A stretch of DNA of 64,000 nucleotides from the sequence record MZ443783.1; one strand, written 5' to 3'. The position numbers and the translations under genes are program-made. The notes beneath the pieces are model-generated. The model searched no databases. It was not told the DNA's origin and worked only from the letters and a program-made list of their open reading frames with translations. Positions 6,802 through 63,890 of this stretch are shown piece after piece. Position 1 is the first letter of the stretch, and each line of letters opens with the position of its first letter.

Positions 6802-7440
6802 TTAATCAGTAGGCTGGCCGAGTTCAGATTCACGCACCTTACGCCATTGAAGCGTAGAGTCTTCAAGTACCATGACCTGATTCACAGCAGGAACCAGCTG
6901 GTCTTTAATGGGTACGTGTTCTTCGCCATAACTACCGTTGATGCTGATCATGGTAGCAGGCTTCTCAGGGTGCGTGTGGTCAAGCGGGTCACGATTGTTA
7001 GTGAGTGTCTCATCACCTTCAATCAGAACGCGAGACTCTGCTTCGGGATAAGACAGATATCCCACACCACGAGTGATTGAAGTCGCAAGTGGCGGCAGCG
7101 CACGGTTGATGATTTGCAGATCGTTCGGGTCATACGTCTGTTCCATCATGGCGTCATCATAGAAATACAGCGCAGTCCAAACATCCTGATACGGGTCTGA
7201 ATTGTTCTTGGCAGTACGTTTGAACGCAGTACCATACGTGGACGATTCAGGGTTGTAGTCAATCCAGATCGCATTGATCGGAAGGACCACGAAACGCGGA
7301 ACTGCATACGAGCAGTAGAACAACAGACCCAACTGCGAGCCATCTTTTGGCAGACGGAACATGATTGGGTTTTTGTTCTGCTGGTGGATATTCGTAAGCA
7401 ACTCAACGTTACTGATGAACTGTTCAAGTTTCAGTTCCAT
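6802..7440 (-). CDS. Fibre-anchor-like structural protein (212 aa), paralogue of the N-terminus of 2152..6162
   Basis: Shared motifs: NPIMF / NPITF, INAIWID / YNLIWID, RDPLDHTHPEKP. Confidence 0.55.
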   Translation of the reverse strand: MELKLEQFISNVELLTNIHQQNKNPIMFRLPKDGSQLGLLFYCSYAVPRFVVLPINAIWIDYNPESSTYGTAFKRTAKNNSDPYQDVWTALYFYDDAMMEQTYDPNDLQIINRALPPLATSITRGVGYLSYPEAESRVLIEGDETLTNNRDPLDHTHPEKPATMISINGSYGEEHVPIKDQLVPAVNQVMVLEDSTLQWRKVRESELGQPTD

Positions 7441-9919: not shown

Positions 9920-9926
9920 AAATTAT
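9920..9926 (-). promoter_or_regulatory. Class-2 promoter-like motif variant (ATAATTT)
   Basis: 26 nt upstream of the sheath start, downstream of a terminator. Confidence 0.45.
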
Positions 9927-18611: not shown

Positions 18612-18873
18612 CTCTATCCTCTAAAACAAATTGTAGTGTGCCTTGTATATTTACAGCTTCAAGGCGCTTACCTGTAGGCATTAACAGGCCATTCAACACA
18701 CCCAGCATATCAGCGCTGTGGCAGTCAGGTGCTATCTGGTGAACGTAGATATCATCAGGCACATCACCTGGGTTAAGCTGCCAAGATGTTCTCAAGGCAG
18801 CACCCATGAATGCCGGACGCTCTACCAGATGCCTGTTCAAAAATGAACATACGTCTTCGGCGCTCAACGTCAT
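18577..18873 (-). CDS. Hypothetical protein (98 aa)
   Basis: ATGA overlap with the polymerase stop; overlaps the clamp start by 35 nt. Confidence 0.4.
   Translation of the reverse strand: MTLSAEDVCSFLNRHLVERPAFMGAALRTSWQLNPGDVPDDIYVHQIAPDCHSADMLGVLNGLLMPTGKRLEAVNIQGTLQFVLEDRDEDLPTAEEPR
18648..18656 (-). promoter_or_regulatory. Class-1 promoter-like motif CTGTAAATA
   Basis: Exact copy, 36 nt upstream of the clamp start. Confidence 0.6.
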
Positions 18874-22075: not shown

Positions 22076-22084
22076 TATTTACAG
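22076..22084 (-). promoter_or_regulatory. Class-1 promoter-like motif CTGTAAATA
   Basis: Exact copy, 38 nt upstream of the polymerase start, right after a terminator. Confidence 0.7.
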
Positions 22085-30279: not shown

Positions 30280-31062
30280 CTAGATAAAAATGCTCTTGAC
30301 CAGAGAGTTGAGTCGCTTTTCCACGGCGTGTCGTTTGTGTGTCGTAAGGAAACAGCACATACGGCGCGACTGTAGATGCAGCGCAATGGCATTGCCCTTG
30401 ACGCGAGCGCAGTCAATCCCAAGGTCAATGTTCCACGGATGCCAAGCACGAGGTGCAAGCATCACCTGTTGGATGTTCGGATAAGTGTCCATCAATACAG
30501 GAATCGCAGACTTTGCCAGTTTCTTGGTCAAATTATCAGTTTTGAACAAAGCCTTAGGCTGTTTGTTCGAAAACCAGTACGGAACCTGCTTGTGGAGTAT
30601 CTCCCCGACTTTAGGAATGCCACCACGAGTAGTCTGAGGCACATACACCAGATAGATATCGATCGTGGTGTTGATGCAGTTCGCTACGCGGTTGTAATCG
30701 CTGTTAGTACGCGAATGCACCTCGGCCAGTCTGAACTTATTGCTGAACTCGATACGCTGCAACCACTGGCGCAAGTCCTGGTGCTGCAACTTGAGAAGGA
30801 CACGGGCCTGCTCCAGAGAATGCTTAGTCACAGACGGGATTGGGCGTATCAGATACTTCGTGGTAGTCTTAGACAGCGAGGACATGAAGCCTTCAACAAC
30901 ACGCTGCATACCAAGAGGCTGCGGCAGTGAGTGAAAGAGATCGACTGCGGTTTGGGTTGTGATGTACGAACCCCACGCCTCAATATACTCAGGGTCAATG
31001 CAGTCTGGGAAAGCACGTAGGTTCAATCCTACTTCGGAGCCATATGTTTTCAAACGACTCAC
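30280..31062 (-). CDS. Hypothetical protein (260 aa)
   Basis: ATGA overlap with the HNH gene. Confidence 0.55.
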   Translation of the reverse strand: MSRLKTYGSEVGLNLRAFPDCIDPEYIEAWGSYITTQTAVDLFHSLPQPLGMQRVVEGFMSSLSKTTTKYLIRPIPSVTKHSLEQARVLLKLQHQDLRQWLQRIEFSNKFRLAEVHSRTNSDYNRVANCINTTIDIYLVYVPQTTRGGIPKVGEILHKQVPYWFSNKQPKALFKTDNLTKKLAKSAIPVLMDTYPNIQQVMLAPRAWHPWNIDLGIDCARVKGNAIALHLQSRRMCCFLTTHKRHAVEKRLNSLVKSIFI

Positions 31063-31424
31063 TTTCTACCTCCGTGAAGCAATCGAGAGCCGCGTCGGTT
31101 TGCAGTACCGATTTGGTTATTGTCGCACGTATAGCACAGCAGTTCAAGGTTATGCTTCATGTTAGAACCACCATTGGCATGTGCAACTTTATGGTTGAGA
31201 ATCAATTCGCGTGTGGGCTTACCACAGCGCTCGCAGTAGTAACCGCGCTCGTCGATGATGCTCATCTTGAGTTTGGTCCAGTCTGCTCTGTCCATGCGAA
31301 CGTGTGTACCTGCACGGGCACGTTCAAATCCCGTTACGCCAGCAAGACGTTGGGAAGTAGACAGAGTACGTCCACGTCCACCTTGCGTTCGAGCGGCGAT
31401 GCCGCCTCTTGGTCTGTATGCCAT
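31059..31424 (-). CDS. HNH endonuclease family protein (121 aa)
   Basis: CERCG...ILNHKVAHANGGSNMKHNLELLCYTCDN: CxxC, HNH-like core, CxxC. Confidence 0.8.
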   Translation of the reverse strand: MAYRPRGGIAARTQGGRGRTLSTSQRLAGVTGFERARAGTHVRMDRADWTKLKMSIIDERGYYCERCGKPTRELILNHKVAHANGGSNMKHNLELLCYTCDNNQIGTANRRGSRLLHGGRK

Positions 31425-46700: not shown

Positions 46701-46707
46701 AAATTAT
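46701..46707 (-). promoter_or_regulatory. Class-2 promoter-like motif variant (ATAATTT)
   Basis: Intergenic, 26 nt upstream of the endolysin start. Confidence 0.4.
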
Positions 46708-53711: not shown

Positions 53712-54995
53712 TTACTTCTTCTTCTTTTTCTTTTCTTTCTTCGGCTTGTCGTCTTCGTCGTCTTCGCCCATCTTGACTGCCAGCTTACCTTCATAGATAT
53801 CAGCCATGAGAGTAAGCACTTTGGACTCCAACATAATGTCTGCTGGTACGGACGTTGAGTTGAAAGCTACTTCGGCATCAGCCAGTGCGGATTGCAGATA
53901 GACCATGCTAACCAGATTGACTTTGATGTTGTCTTTCTTGGTCATGTTCATGAACATCTTGAGGCCAGCCGACTGCCACTTATTAGTTTCGGCATAATGA
54001 CCTAACACGCCGTGAATAATCCAACGAGCTTTCGCAACGATTGCACGTGGGTTGTTCGCTTCACGCAGGAACTGAATAACACCAATCAGGTCCATCGCAA
54101 GATACGCACCAATCATCTGGACAGCTTTCGCTTCCATATCGATCTCTGGATCTGCTGCTGCGAGTTCGGCAACGAGGTTCTTATCGAAGTCCTCACCACC
54201 TTTCACGGACGCATAGATATTCTGCAACATGGTGATTGCGCCACGCATCTGACCACCAGCATACTCTGCAACCTGATGCAGTGCTGCTTCTGCTTTATCA
54301 CGCGCCTTATCTTTCTTCGGCATGATATCAAGCTGGTCACTGATCTCCAACAGACGCTTATGAATCACGTCAGTAGGAATCGGCCTGATAGGCAATTGCG
54401 TCATGCGACTGATCATCGTGTTCTTCATCTTCTCTGGGTTCGTTGTTACGAAGATGAATACAACGTGCGCTGGTGGCTGCTCGGTGATCTTAAGGAACTT
54501 CGATTCGGCCGCGCTCGACATGAGGTGCGATTCGTCGAAGATGAATACGCGACGTTTGAACATCGGACTCAGCGGTGCGCTGTCCACAATCTTCTGGCTA
54601 CCTTCAACCTTACCAGCATCGCCACCCATATCGAACTCTTGCTCATCAGGGTGTGCGCCACGGTCGTGCATCTCACACGAACGGCATTTGCCACAGGCCG
54701 AGAACGTGTCGCAGTTGATATACTTCGCAACCAGACGCGCAAACGTTGTTTTACCTGAACCCAAATGACCAGTAATGATCATTGTCGAGGGAATCGTTTT
54801 CGACTTCTGCCAACCCTTCATGATCTTAACGATGTGGTCTTGACCAACATAGTCTTCAATCTTCTTTGGTCGGAATTGGTCTGCAAAGTTAATCGTTGTC
54901 AGTTCAACTGACTCGGAAGAATCGCCTTTCTTTTTCTTTGGAGTATCACCACCAAAGGAACGCGACTTCTTCTTTTTCTTTTCTTCTTTAGCCAT
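53712..54995 (-). CDS. dnaX: Clamp loader ATPase, DNA polymerase III gamma/tau-like (427 aa from ATG 54995; TTG 55001 possible)
   Basis: FADQFRPKKIEDYVGQDH, GHLGSGKTTFAR, zinc motif C....CGKCRSC, FIFDESHLM, SRM, GQMRGAI. Confidence 0.88.
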   Translation of the reverse strand: MAKEEKKKKKSRSFGGDTPKKKKGDSSESVELTTINFADQFRPKKIEDYVGQDHIVKIMKGWQKSKTIPSTMIITGHLGSGKTTFARLVAKYINCDTFSACGKCRSCEMHDRGAHPDEQEFDMGGDAGKVEGSQKIVDSAPLSPMFKRRVFIFDESHLMSSAAESKFLKITEQPPAHVVFIFVTTNPEKMKNTMISRMTQLPIRPIPTDVIHKRLLEISDQLDIMPKKDKARDKAEAALHQVAEYAGGQMRGAITMLQNIYASVKGGEDFDKNLVAELAAADPEIDMEAKAVQMIGAYLAMDLIGVIQFLREANNPRAIVAKARWIIHGVLGHYAETNKWQSAGLKMFMNMTKKDNIKVNLVSMVYLQSALADAEVAFNSTSVPADIMLESKVLTLMADIYEGKLAVKMGEDDEDDKPKKEKKKKKK

Positions 54996-55032
54996 TTTCA
55001 ATTCGCCCTTAGTTCTAATGCGTTACACCAGT

Positions 55033-55041
55033 TATTTACAG
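55033..55041 (-). promoter_or_regulatory. Class-1 promoter-like motif CTGTAAATA
   Basis: Exact copy, 37 nt upstream of dnaX, after a terminator. Confidence 0.7.
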
Positions 55042-55136: not shown

Positions 55137-55334
55137 TTAGGCAAAGCTCATCTCCCAACGCGGTACAACGCGGAAGAATTGCTTAAAGTGGGACGGTGGG
55201 TTCTGCTTGATGGACTCAAGTTTCTTTTCCACAACGTCATAATCTTTTATGCCACTCTCAACGCAGTGAGTGGTGAATGTACCGTCAGCCTCAATCAAAT
55301 CGGCGACAACACGGTAGCTTGGTTTTCTCAGCAT
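55137..55334 (-). CDS. Hypothetical protein (65 aa)
   Basis: AGGAG SD; variant motif CTGTAAACA at 55374-55382 upstream. Confidence 0.6.
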   Translation of the reverse strand: MLRKPSYRVVADLIEADGTFTTHCVESGIKDYDVVEKKLESIKQNPPSHFKQFFRVVPRWEMSFA

Positions 55335-55399
55335 CTAGTCTCCTGAAAACGAAATTCTCATTGCTCTGAATTATGTTTACAGATTACTGGAGTAGTCAC

Positions 55400-55760
55400 A
55401 AAAGAATAAAGTAAGACAAATCTTAAACTCCAATAGGGACTCGCTGGAATTCCTATTGGAGTTCACCCTCAACCGATGACGGTCGGCGGAAGGTGTTCTC
55501 CCCGTGCTTTTCGATTGCACCAGCACGGTAGCGCTTGCGGTCTTACGCTCTTGTCATGCAGCGGGCCGGCAGGGATGGTAGCATTTCCCGCCGCAAAGAG
55601 CAGCCGCTTTCGGCCATTAGCGATAACGCGGTGTTACGCTTAACGGCCCGACTCTGTGGCCGAGTCTGTACAAAAAAGAGTTCGGCCTATTCCCCAATTC
55701 GGCAAAAAGAAATAAGCCGAACTAAACAGTCAACGCACACTCCATATGCGCTGTTTTGTA
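55400..55760 (-). ncRNA. Candidate structured non-coding RNA (family unknown)
   Basis: Largest intergenic gap in the window, nearly filled by stem-loops, with class-2 motif CTAATTT at 55768-55774 pointing into it. Strand inferred from that motif only. Confidence 0.45.
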
Positions 55761-55767
55761 CTGTAAC

Positions 55768-55774
55768 AAATTAG
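55768..55774 (-). promoter_or_regulatory. Class-2 promoter-like motif CTAATTT with no CDS directly downstream
   Basis: Intergenic; the next credible start codon is more than 430 nt away. Confidence 0.45.
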
Positions 55775-55801
55775 AAACATCCTGCAATATTCAGACAATT
55801 C

Positions 55802-56389
55802 TTAGTTCAACATCGGAACAAGATTTTGCAAGAAATGTTTGCGATCAAACGAACTGATTCGGTGCGGATGATCGACGTGCATGTTCCATCCTTTGTTGAA
55901 CAGCAGCACGTTCTTCGGCAGGACAATGTTAAGGCCAACGCGAGTGAACGAATCACGAACGGCAGTCACTGGATTGTCGTCAACCAGAATCCAAGTACCT
56001 TCACCGTACTTCTCGTTCAGGTAAGCAATCTTATCAGGATGCTGGCGTGAGTCCAGACAGTCGATGTGGTCAAACAACGACAGGTGCTTCTCCAACACCT
56101 TGCGTGTGTAGCGTTCACCTTTGGCGTGATAACCACGATGCGTACAAATGCCGACACTGAAACCGTCGCGCACCAGCATTGCAACCGTTTGGATGAAGTA
56201 GTCACGCATGTTAGCTTCGAGCATGAAGCGACCGTCAGCCAGCATCTCCACGAAAGGTTCGTGACCATTCTCTGGCGTAATGTACGTGTCGGTACCTGGG
56301 TAGATTCCCCAGTTCATCAGATAGCACAGCATGAAGTTATGCGTATCGAATGCCGTGTCGTCCATGTCGAAGAAAATATATTTAATCAT
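55802..56389 (-). CDS. HAD-superfamily phosphatase, 5'(3')-deoxyribonucleotidase-like (195 aa)
   Basis: YIFFDMDDT (DxD motif I), ICTHRG, K (motif III), ILVDDNP (motif IV). Confidence 0.8.
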   Translation of the reverse strand: MIKYIFFDMDDTAFDTHNFMLCYLMNWGIYPGTDTYITPENGHEPFVEMLADGRFMLEANMRDYFIQTVAMLVRDGFSVGICTHRGYHAKGERYTRKVLEKHLSLFDHIDCLDSRQHPDKIAYLNEKYGEGTWILVDDNPVTAVRDSFTRVGLNIVLPKNVLLFNKGWNMHVDHPHRISSFDRKHFLQNLVPMLN

Positions 56390-63883: not shown

Positions 63884-63890
63884 AAATTAG
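63884..63890 (-). promoter_or_regulatory. Class-2 promoter-like motif CTAATTT
   Basis: Intergenic, 23 nt upstream of 63860. Confidence 0.55.

Follow-up and report, generated by a model that had tools for sequence, protein, structure and literature searches.

Evidence for a conserved, pseudoknotted non-coding RNA family upstream of the clamp-loader block in one clade of jumbo phages

Bacteria and phages have few large RNAs of complex fold, and the ones whose function has been solved have mostly proved to be ribozymes or the cores of ribonucleoprotein machines. GOLLD and ROOL, which occur mainly in phages and prophages, are RNAs of ~580-800 nt with many helices, pseudoknots, no open reading frame (ORF) and covariation-supported structure; they are free-standing rather than obviously cis-regulatory. 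The structural features, and perhaps the free-standing nature too, are shared by an RNA of several hundred nucleotides specified by the gap at 55335-55801 of a 64,000-nucleotide stretch of the genome of Erwinia phage pEa_SNUABM_28 (MZ443783.1; Alexandravirus; 267 kb). (This whole stretch is referred to below as the window, and window coordinates are record coordinates minus 124,000.) The RNA almost certainly represents a conserved, strand-specific, non-coding and pseudoknotted family restricted to one jumbo-phage clade; the family is previously undescribed. It differs from GOLLD and ROOL in being shorter (~290-470 nt across its lineages, some of which appear to have two pseudoknots), in giving no covariance-model match to either, in not lying beside tRNA genes and in being confined to a single clade of Enterobacterales jumbo phages. 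The pRNA of phage phi29 is likewise phage-encoded, structured and non-coding and has its own promoter (a predicted one in the present case). pRNA works as a component of a ribonucleoprotein machine, a role that the RNA described here may share. The Rfam model of pRNA shows no similarity to it, however, and the RNA lies in a replication block, not near packaging genes.

The gap separates two minus-strand genes (55802-56389 and 55137-55334) and carries no annotated feature in 46 of 46 related records. It had been called the largest in the window, and none larger was found, since two bigger gaps left by crude ORF calling correspond to annotated coding sequences (CDSs). The minus-strand RNA folds at -175.7 kcal/mol, compared with -134.6 +/- 5.4 kcal/mol for dinucleotide shuffles (z -7.66); for the plus strand, z is only -2.97. 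The difference between strands has the same direction in phage Yoloswag (z -8.12 vs -5.39) and is weak in phage JA29 (z -3.83 vs -3.45). Because of this asymmetry, the RNA is assigned to the minus strand, that is, to the sense of its flanking genes. Many of the conserved pairs are G-U wobbles, which would be A-C on the opposite strand and fit a minus-strand RNA alone. A plus-strand RNA, which folds much worse and whose conserved G-U pairs would turn into A-C, was considered and rejected. G+C content is 0.57-0.61 in the core of the RNA and ~0.48 in the surrounding region. The first-pass annotation of this DNA, made from the letters alone, had proposed a discrete structured RNA here, and had singled out a folding energy below that of dinucleotide-shuffled controls as a point on which the proposal would stand or fall. 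The first of these is supported by the strand asymmetry, covariation across genera, lack of a conserved ORF and GC-rich core, and the second is borne out on the minus strand.

In Alexandravirus, Sasquatchvirus (Y3) and the unclassified SNUABM_34 group, homologues with 69-100% identity align over the whole gap. Protein synteny, followed by nhmmer and reading of the sequences, brought in four more lineages: Yoloswagvirus, Rivsvirus (SNUABM_5), Yersinia phage fHe-Yen9-02 (Yen9-02 below) and Salmondvirus (JA29, JA11); in these the flanking proteins are 33-49% identical to those of the window and the flanking DNA no longer aligns. In all, the RNA is carried by at least seven lineages of genus rank, made up of Erwinia, Dickeya and Yersinia jumbo phages with genomes of 250-270 kb. 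A pattern scan of IMG/VR with the invariant parts recovered the same clade alone, plus four metagenomic jumbo-phage contigs; nothing beyond that clade appeared among the metagenome matches listed. The same scan of 185,579 bacterial and archaeal genomes (one per species) gave chance matches alone, blastn from the JA29 and Yen9-02 RNAs returned the same clade alone, and a profile search with the upstream protein (see below) added no lineage. Neither a second copy in the window nor a copy in the corresponding locus of Klebsiella phage Eowyn was found.

Covariation in two alignments carries the structure, with slid pairing partners serving as the control. Alignment 1 covers the 3' domain including its pseudoknot (19 sequences, 39 pairs): 92.9% of cells are paired, against 34-49% after sliding, and 16 pairs are compensatory, against 2-4. 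Alignment 2 takes in all lineages (26 distinct sequences, 35 pairs, aligned to covariance model R1): 92.5% of cells are paired (28-48% slid) and 22 of the 35 pairs are compensatory (4-9 slid). The observed pairing values were reached by none of 500 shuffles in either alignment. Covariation among homologous intergenic regions of related phages, which had been named as a check, is accordingly present and includes both stems of the pseudoknot. Compensatory changes outside the 3' domain are found in H1, H2, P5b, P6 and parts of P4 (listed below).

No conserved ORF runs over the RNA; from one relative to the next, the longest ORF changes its frame, position and length. Small hypothetical CDSs have been annotated over it in three genomes: Yoloswag gp204 (L032:1952-2116; L numbers refer to our locus sequences), fHeYen902_106c (L033:1582-1788) and pEaSNUABM5_00214 (L034:2264-2389). 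They lie in different frames or strands, the Yoloswag and Yen9-02 products are mutually unrelated, and all three are probably mis-annotations. A scan of Rfam 15 (4227 models), the first test that had been suggested, gave no match at the gathering threshold in the whole window; relaxing the limit to E = 10 brought up microRNA matches and one to RAGATH-13 on the flank, all of them at chance level, and the RNA in six related loci also matched no family. ARAGORN found neither tRNA nor tmRNA in the window. The literature on these phages does not mention the RNA; a 2023 catalogue of >10,000 candidate viral RNAs (29-151 nt) may hold fragments of it.

The 3' domain has the order UAAGAC, H-type pseudoknot, GGGGAG, P8, P9, which is conserved in all lineages. 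Its elements in the window are:

55502-55545, minus strand: UAAGAC (55540-45) followed by the H-type pseudoknot, both stems of which are maintained by compensatory changes
55531-34 with 55517-20, minus strand: pseudoknot stem S1, GCGC/GUGC; 2 of 4 pairs with double changes (19 sequences)
55522-28 with 55502-08, minus strand: pseudoknot stem S2, CCGUGCU/AGCACGG; compensatory changes at 5 of 7 pairs (19 sequences) and 6 of 7 (26 sequences)
55498-55503, minus strand: GGGGAG, segment 1 of a three-segment toggle; GGGGAG in 25 of 26 sequences and GGGGGA in Sasquatchvirus Y3/pEp_52
55464-55495, minus strand: hairpin P8, apical loop CCGUCA (55477-82); 10 of 13 pairs compensatory
55426-55463, minus strand: hairpin P9, with toggle segments 2 and 3 as its lower 7 bp, ACUCCAA/UUGGAGU
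55407-55425, minus strand: conserved U-rich tail after P9, a possible 3' end region; nearly invariant in the Alexandra, Y3 and SNUABM_34 groups

The two stems of the pseudoknot cross in the order S1 5', S2 5', S1 3', S2 3', as an H-type pseudoknot should, and each is compensated. S1 was left out of the covariance model, yet 5-7 bp form in the corresponding position in eight lineages, each with a sequence of its own (ACGU/ACGU, GGCGCG/CGCGCC and GGUGUG/CGCACC are examples). The first-pass annotation had noticed GTGC as a segment with two competing partners; what it had seen is this pseudoknot, in which the two stems coexist. Alternative pairing does have a better-supported place in the RNA, elsewhere, in the GGAG/CUCC/GGAG toggle described below. 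Every lineage has a hairpin with a CCGUCA, CCGACA or GCGUCA loop, which in Yoloswag, SNUABM_5 and Yen9-02 belongs to the 5' domain. In the window's lineage, UAAGAC/UAAGAU stands on either side of the 3' domain; the second copy is absent in Yoloswag and JA29. A consensus terminator scan found no canonical terminator after P9 in the window's lineage.

An H-type pseudoknot with an A/U-rich third loop brings to mind the type III antitoxin ToxI, and the Alexandravirus arrangement GCUACC-N6-GUGCA-N3-GAAA resembles a ToxI repeat. The RNA might on that account be an anti-defence decoy, mimicking a type III antitoxin pseudoknot or, with GGA motifs in the H1 hairpin loop and in a single-stranded stretch, acting as a sponge for a host RNA-binding protein such as CsrA/RsmA. 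Such a function is most improbable: Y3, Yoloswag, JA29 and Yen9-02 have lost the likeness to ToxI, with the stems covarying, tandem repeats are lacking, three or four GGA sites are far fewer than in known CsrA sponges, and the RNA has a fixed place in a core syntenic block across three host genera, which does not look like an accessory counter-defence gene. A mimic of a ToxI-like antitoxin was rejected on the lack of repeats and on the resemblance being seen in one lineage. Type III antitoxin RNAs themselves have tandem repeats of ~34-45 nt beside a toxin endoribonuclease gene; here the repeats are lacking and the neighbours are a HAD phosphatase and a clamp loader.

Almost every helix of the RNA covaries, whereas GGGGAG and the lower part of P9 barely vary. 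Segment-1 columns G44-G46 and G48 are invariant and A47 is nearly so; in P9 the lower 7 bp are invariant in 26 sequences, while 6 upper pairs covary. This invariance is not a mere effect of the search, because most of the lineages had already come to light through synteny when the search pattern was drawn up. The three segments offer two exclusive pairings: GGAG of segment 1 can pair with CUCC of the 5' strand of P9 (segment 2), closing P8, in competition with the 3' strand of P9 (segment 3). The complementarity of segment 1 reaches 10-11 bp in JA29, in Yen9-02 and in an uncultivated viral genome (UViG) related to JA29, the added stretch being in each case a copy of segment 3 peculiar to that lineage (GGAGUAUGCC is present twice in Yen9-02 and GGAGUUUA twice in JA29). 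In the UViG the three segments change together in such a way that both pairings are preserved. Constrained folding gives the P9 fold an advantage of 6-9 kcal/mol over the pairing of segments 1 and 2. (What this would mean in operation is that segments 1 and 2 would pair first, during transcription, with P8 closed and segment 3 free; the final, more stable fold would have P9 formed and GGGGAG free. Each fold would expose a different Shine-Dalgarno-like GGAG, and the first would be replaced by the second unless held, for example by stacking on pseudoknot stem S2 or by a bound factor.)

Upstream of the 3' domain, the RNA can be thought of as a module A at the putative 5' end followed by a 5' domain of further helices:

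55731-55753, minus strand: hairpin H1, a 7-bp stem whose loop holds an invariant GGAGU (55739-55743)
55672-55723, minus strand: hairpin H2 (55679-55723) and a U6 run (55672-55677); terminator-like, with a large loop
55668-55761, minus strand: module A (H1, H2 and P0), in which P0 would make a three-way junction at the putative 5' end
55751-55761 with 55668-55678, minus strand: helix P0, GUACAAAA/UUUUGUAC, an 11-nt inverted repeat that is 91% complementary
55650-55666, minus strand: hairpin P3, GACUC/GAGUC, in all close relatives; invariant and so without covariation
55612-55648, minus strand: long hairpin P4 with the invariant loop region GUAACACCGCGU
55537-55607, minus strand: helices P5a, P5b and P6, which enclose an apical region with an invariant GCUACC (55577-55582)

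H1 pairs in 100% of cells, with compensatory changes at 3 of its 7 pairs, and an H1-like hairpin with the same loop motif is found in Yoloswag, SNUABM_5 and Yen9-02. H2 pairs in 94% of cells (5 of 12 pairs compensatory); its stem of 11-12 bp and loop of ~20 nt are followed by U6-12, and the consensus terminator scan passes over it on account of a loop of >8 nt. The T-run after H2 ranges from 6 to 12 T in close relatives (L004, L005, L013, L014, L018, L019), which is homopolymer slippage at a terminator-like site. P0 is invariant in the Alexandra, Y3 and SNUABM_34 groups and hence uninformative on covariation; Yoloswag has, by eye, a differing yet complementary pair at the same site (CGUAA/UUACG), and P0 is tentatively taken to close H1 and H2 into a three-way junction. 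P4 shows compensatory changes in parts of its stem in Y3 and the SNUABM_34 group. Compensatory pairs number 4 of 6 in P5b (55547-52 with 55596-601) and 6 of 9 in P6, where 94% of cells are paired.

All nine stems that had been listed for this region are present at the coordinates given for them, and seven of them, P9, S2, P5b, P4, P3, H2 and H1, belong to the conserved structure. The other two do not: pairing of a GGGATG/CATTTCCC arm is not kept in relatives, and a GCCG-CTTT-CGGC hairpin does not hold up in the SNUABM_34 group, which shows covariation of the competing P5a pairing instead.

Several smaller features of the 5' domain were seen along the way. A 13-nt direct repeat with one mismatch (RNA sense AGCGUAA-C/G-ACCGC) links 55537-55549 (AGCGUAAGACCGC) with the P4 loop at 55628-55640 (AGCGUAACACCGC); it offers the GCGG strand of P5a (55604-55607) two possible partners and hints at further exchange. 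In pEp_SNUABM_52 (L020; alignment columns 186-195) the P4 loop region has a 10-nt tandem duplication (GTAACACCGC) that is absent from Y3. A second H-type pseudoknot is apparent by eye at the start of the 5' domain in Yoloswag (L032 ~2105-2195), SNUABM_5 (L034) and Yen9-02 (L033), with arms such as CGCAACC/GGUU-GCG and ACUCUCAC/GUGAGAGU. The H2 loop of SNUABM_5 (L034 ~2480-2500) repeats a 10-mer, CAAUCCCUCU, of the 5' strand of S2 (~2215-2235), and that of Yoloswag (L032 ~2140-2160) repeats a 7-mer of its S2 5' strand (~1915-1935). In these two phages the H2 loop could compete for the 3' strand of S2, an arrangement that is not seen in the window's lineage.

RNAs that are large, strongly conserved and built with several pseudoknots often turn out to be ribozymes, and a new self-cleaving or otherwise catalytic RNA has to be considered. 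The complex fold with its invariant unpaired UAAGAC, GGGGAG, GCUACC and CCGUCA would suit one, as would the UAAGAC/UAAGAU flanks of the 3' domain in the window's lineage and the constant upstream HAD phosphatase, which is weakly similar to polynucleotide kinase/phosphatase families. Catalysis is nevertheless improbable, in that the second UAAGAC is missing in Yoloswag and JA29, no cleavage site is identifiable in the sequence, and no known ribozyme model matches at E = 10 except RAGATH-13, on the flank and at chance level.

Two recurrent motifs bear on how the RNA might be transcribed:

55768-55773, minus strand: cTAATTT, a late-class promoter-like motif with no CDS behind it
55371-55382, minus strand: CTGTAAACATAA, a replication-class promoter-like motif for the gene of a 65-aa protein, followed by a ribosome-binding site; the downstream boundary of the RNA unit

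The first of these had been picked out as a motif pointing into the region, and it is a real recurrent one: TAATTT has 18 minus-strand copies in the window against a single plus-strand copy, and intergenic DNA, which makes up 7.4% of the window, holds 8 of the 18. cTAATTT stands 23-48 nt upstream of the tail-sheath and endolysin genes and of several genes of unknown function (9920-9925, 46701-46706 and 63884-63889, for example) and is probably a late promoter class. That the RNA is late, as the first-pass annotation had it, is supported by this association, the motif before it being the one that also precedes tail-sheath and endolysin genes. TAATT(T/A) is found upstream of the RNA in every lineage, with TAATAT in Yen9-02. 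The second motif, CTGTAAA (14 minus-strand copies in the window, 1 on the plus strand; 8 intergenic), precedes the genes for DNA polymerase, processivity clamp, clamp loader, SbcD-like nuclease and HNH endonuclease, and probably constitutes the promoter class of the replication (early or middle) genes. In every lineage a CTGTAAA-type motif stands between the RNA and the gene that follows, and the RNA can be described as a late-class motif unit set within a replication-class block. CTGTAAA(T/C)A often comes directly after a terminator (55376-55382, 55035-55041, 22078-22084 and 18650-18656, for example) and resembles the T4 late consensus TATAAATA.

The alternative that had been put forward at the outset, a structured origin, would have the transcript prime or activate replication, as do ColE1 RNA II and the T4 origin transcripts. 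The region does lie in the replication gene block beside the clamp loader, and its promoter motif has no CDS behind it. That motif is of the late class, however; cumulative GC skew has no inflection at 55.5 kb, the locus has no iterons or tandem repeats, and the core is GC-rich (0.57-0.61), unlike an AT-rich unwinding element. The constraint is also specific to one RNA strand, the many conserved G-U wobbles being sensible on that strand alone. An origin is consequently highly improbable.

JA29 and the related UViG provide the clearest view of the RNA as a unit. In both, cTAATTT overlaps the stop codon of the HAD gene, module A is absent, and ~45 nt after P9 a GC-rich hairpin with U7-9 precedes the clamp loader's own CTGTAAAT motif. 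As read from its motifs, the JA29 locus is a complete promoter-RNA-terminator unit.

For the window we propose, with confidence evenly balanced for and against, an independent late transcript that works in its folded form, the most plausible role being that of a scaffold or regulator that binds a protein. It would be transcribed late from cTAATTT as its own unit, run on the minus strand from ~55761 to ~55405-55425 (roughly 340-355 nt) and act free and folded, not as part of an mRNA; the invariant loops GGAGU, ACCGCG, GCUACC and CCGUCA would be its putative recognition sites. This proposal is favored because the JA29 RNA is bracketed by promoter and terminator, because the gene downstream changes between lineages, because a promoter motif parts the RNA from that gene in every lineage, and because the CCGUCA hairpin has moved between domains, as in flexible ribonucleoprotein scaffolds.

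Several points weigh against an independent scaffold. The start, end and timing of the RNA are all deduced from motifs in the DNA. The pairing statistics of alignment 2 come from sequences fitted to their own model, a procedure that favors structure. In every case the replication clamp-loader block follows closely after the RNA on the same strand, and cis-acting leaders typically have a toggle. H2 and its U-run look like a terminator in the window's lineage, ~90 nt past the putative start, so that the core may depend on read-through, a second start or processing, and module A could be a separate small RNA. (Module A might equally be a leader whose terminator is leaky, or else a structural 5' domain that P0 closes.)

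Some of these points are what one would expect of a cis-acting leader, riboswitch-like or a protein-controlled attenuator or operator, forming the long 5' untranslated region of a late transcript into the replication genes, with the pseudoknot domain sensing a ligand or protein and the GGAG/CUCC/GGAG toggle relaying the signal. Riboswitch and attenuator leaders offer an evident parallel: a conserved pseudoknotted domain stands directly before three segments of which the middle one pairs with either neighbour, and the JA29 RNA has a terminator downstream. The constant same-strand position directly upstream of the clamp-loader block and the co-varying duplicated arms of the toggle fit a leader well. 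H2 with its U-run (55672-55723) and the JA29 terminator could be regulated terminators, and no strong terminator intervenes between P9 and the 65-aa gene in the window's lineage. What sets the RNA apart from such leaders is, first, that the third segment lies outside any terminator and any real ribosome-binding site: toggle segment 3 overlaps neither the JA29 terminator, whose stem is ~45 nt further on, nor the ribosome-binding site of the next gene. Second, a separate CTGTAAA-type promoter motif precedes the next gene in every lineage, and that gene is not conserved (65-aa protein, ~108-aa gene or clamp loader). Third, the RNA's own motif is late class and the downstream genes are replication class. 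Finally, the RNA, which measures 290-470 nt and in some lineages appears to have a second pseudoknot, is several-fold larger than known leaders, and no ligand is implied.

The pseudoknot of the T4 gene 32 mRNA leader, an autogenous translational operator, is comparable in being H-type, in lying in a phage replication-gene region and in having an A/U-rich stretch after it toward the start codon. Here, in contrast, ~170 nt containing two hairpins and a promoter motif separate the pseudoknot from the next ATG, the downstream gene varies, and the pseudoknot is part of a much larger fold. On balance a leader is the main rival to the independent transcript, a doubtful interpretation but one with a real chance of being right.

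Beyond the independent scaffold or regulator, the RNA might conceivably be the catalytic or structural core of a new late phage ribonucleoprotein, either an RNA that engages translation or a new class of ribozyme; we regard this as unlikely. The former could work through the exposed Shine-Dalgarno-like GGAG and an anti-Shine-Dalgarno-like ACUCC, and the latter could use the toggle as a built-in folding or activity switch. Mimicry of the 3' end of 16S rRNA was considered separately and rejected, since the short shared words differ, by eye, between subgroups.

Two-stem pseudoknot covariation over at least seven lineages, together with a co-varying three-segment toggle, makes this a well-supported new family. 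Its phages, which infect Erwinia, Dickeya and Yersinia, are themselves culturable, so that the RNA is open to direct test by phage genetics. Three genome records with small CDSs over the RNA can be corrected, and a working pair of promoter classes, for replication genes and for late genes, becomes available for this phage group. Should the RNA prove to be only a leader, it would be a modest addition to phage gene regulation.

The genes around the RNA are:

55802-56389, minus strand: HAD-superfamily phosphatase-like protein of 195 aa, the upstream neighbour in all lineages; matches phrog_16292 and phrog_415
55137-55334, minus strand: 65-aa protein, the first gene downstream of the RNA in the window
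53712-55001, minus strand: DNA-polymerase clamp loader; matches Pfam DNA_pol3_delta2 and phrog_5846

In relatives of the 195-aa protein the DxDxT and DD motifs of HAD phosphatases are invariant. An SRP19-like RNA-binding domain in it was rejected: with E 0.018 the match is marginal, and the matched stretch lies within the HAD core and is partly deleted in relatives. Downstream, the first gene after the RNA is, according to lineage, that of the 65-aa protein, a ~108-aa gene or the clamp loader; JA29 lacks the 65-aa gene, and Yoloswag and SNUABM_5 have a different gene inserted at this point. Elsewhere in the window, two HNH-endonuclease-like genes (6802-7440 and 31059-31424) lie among structural and replication genes and may encode homing endonucleases.

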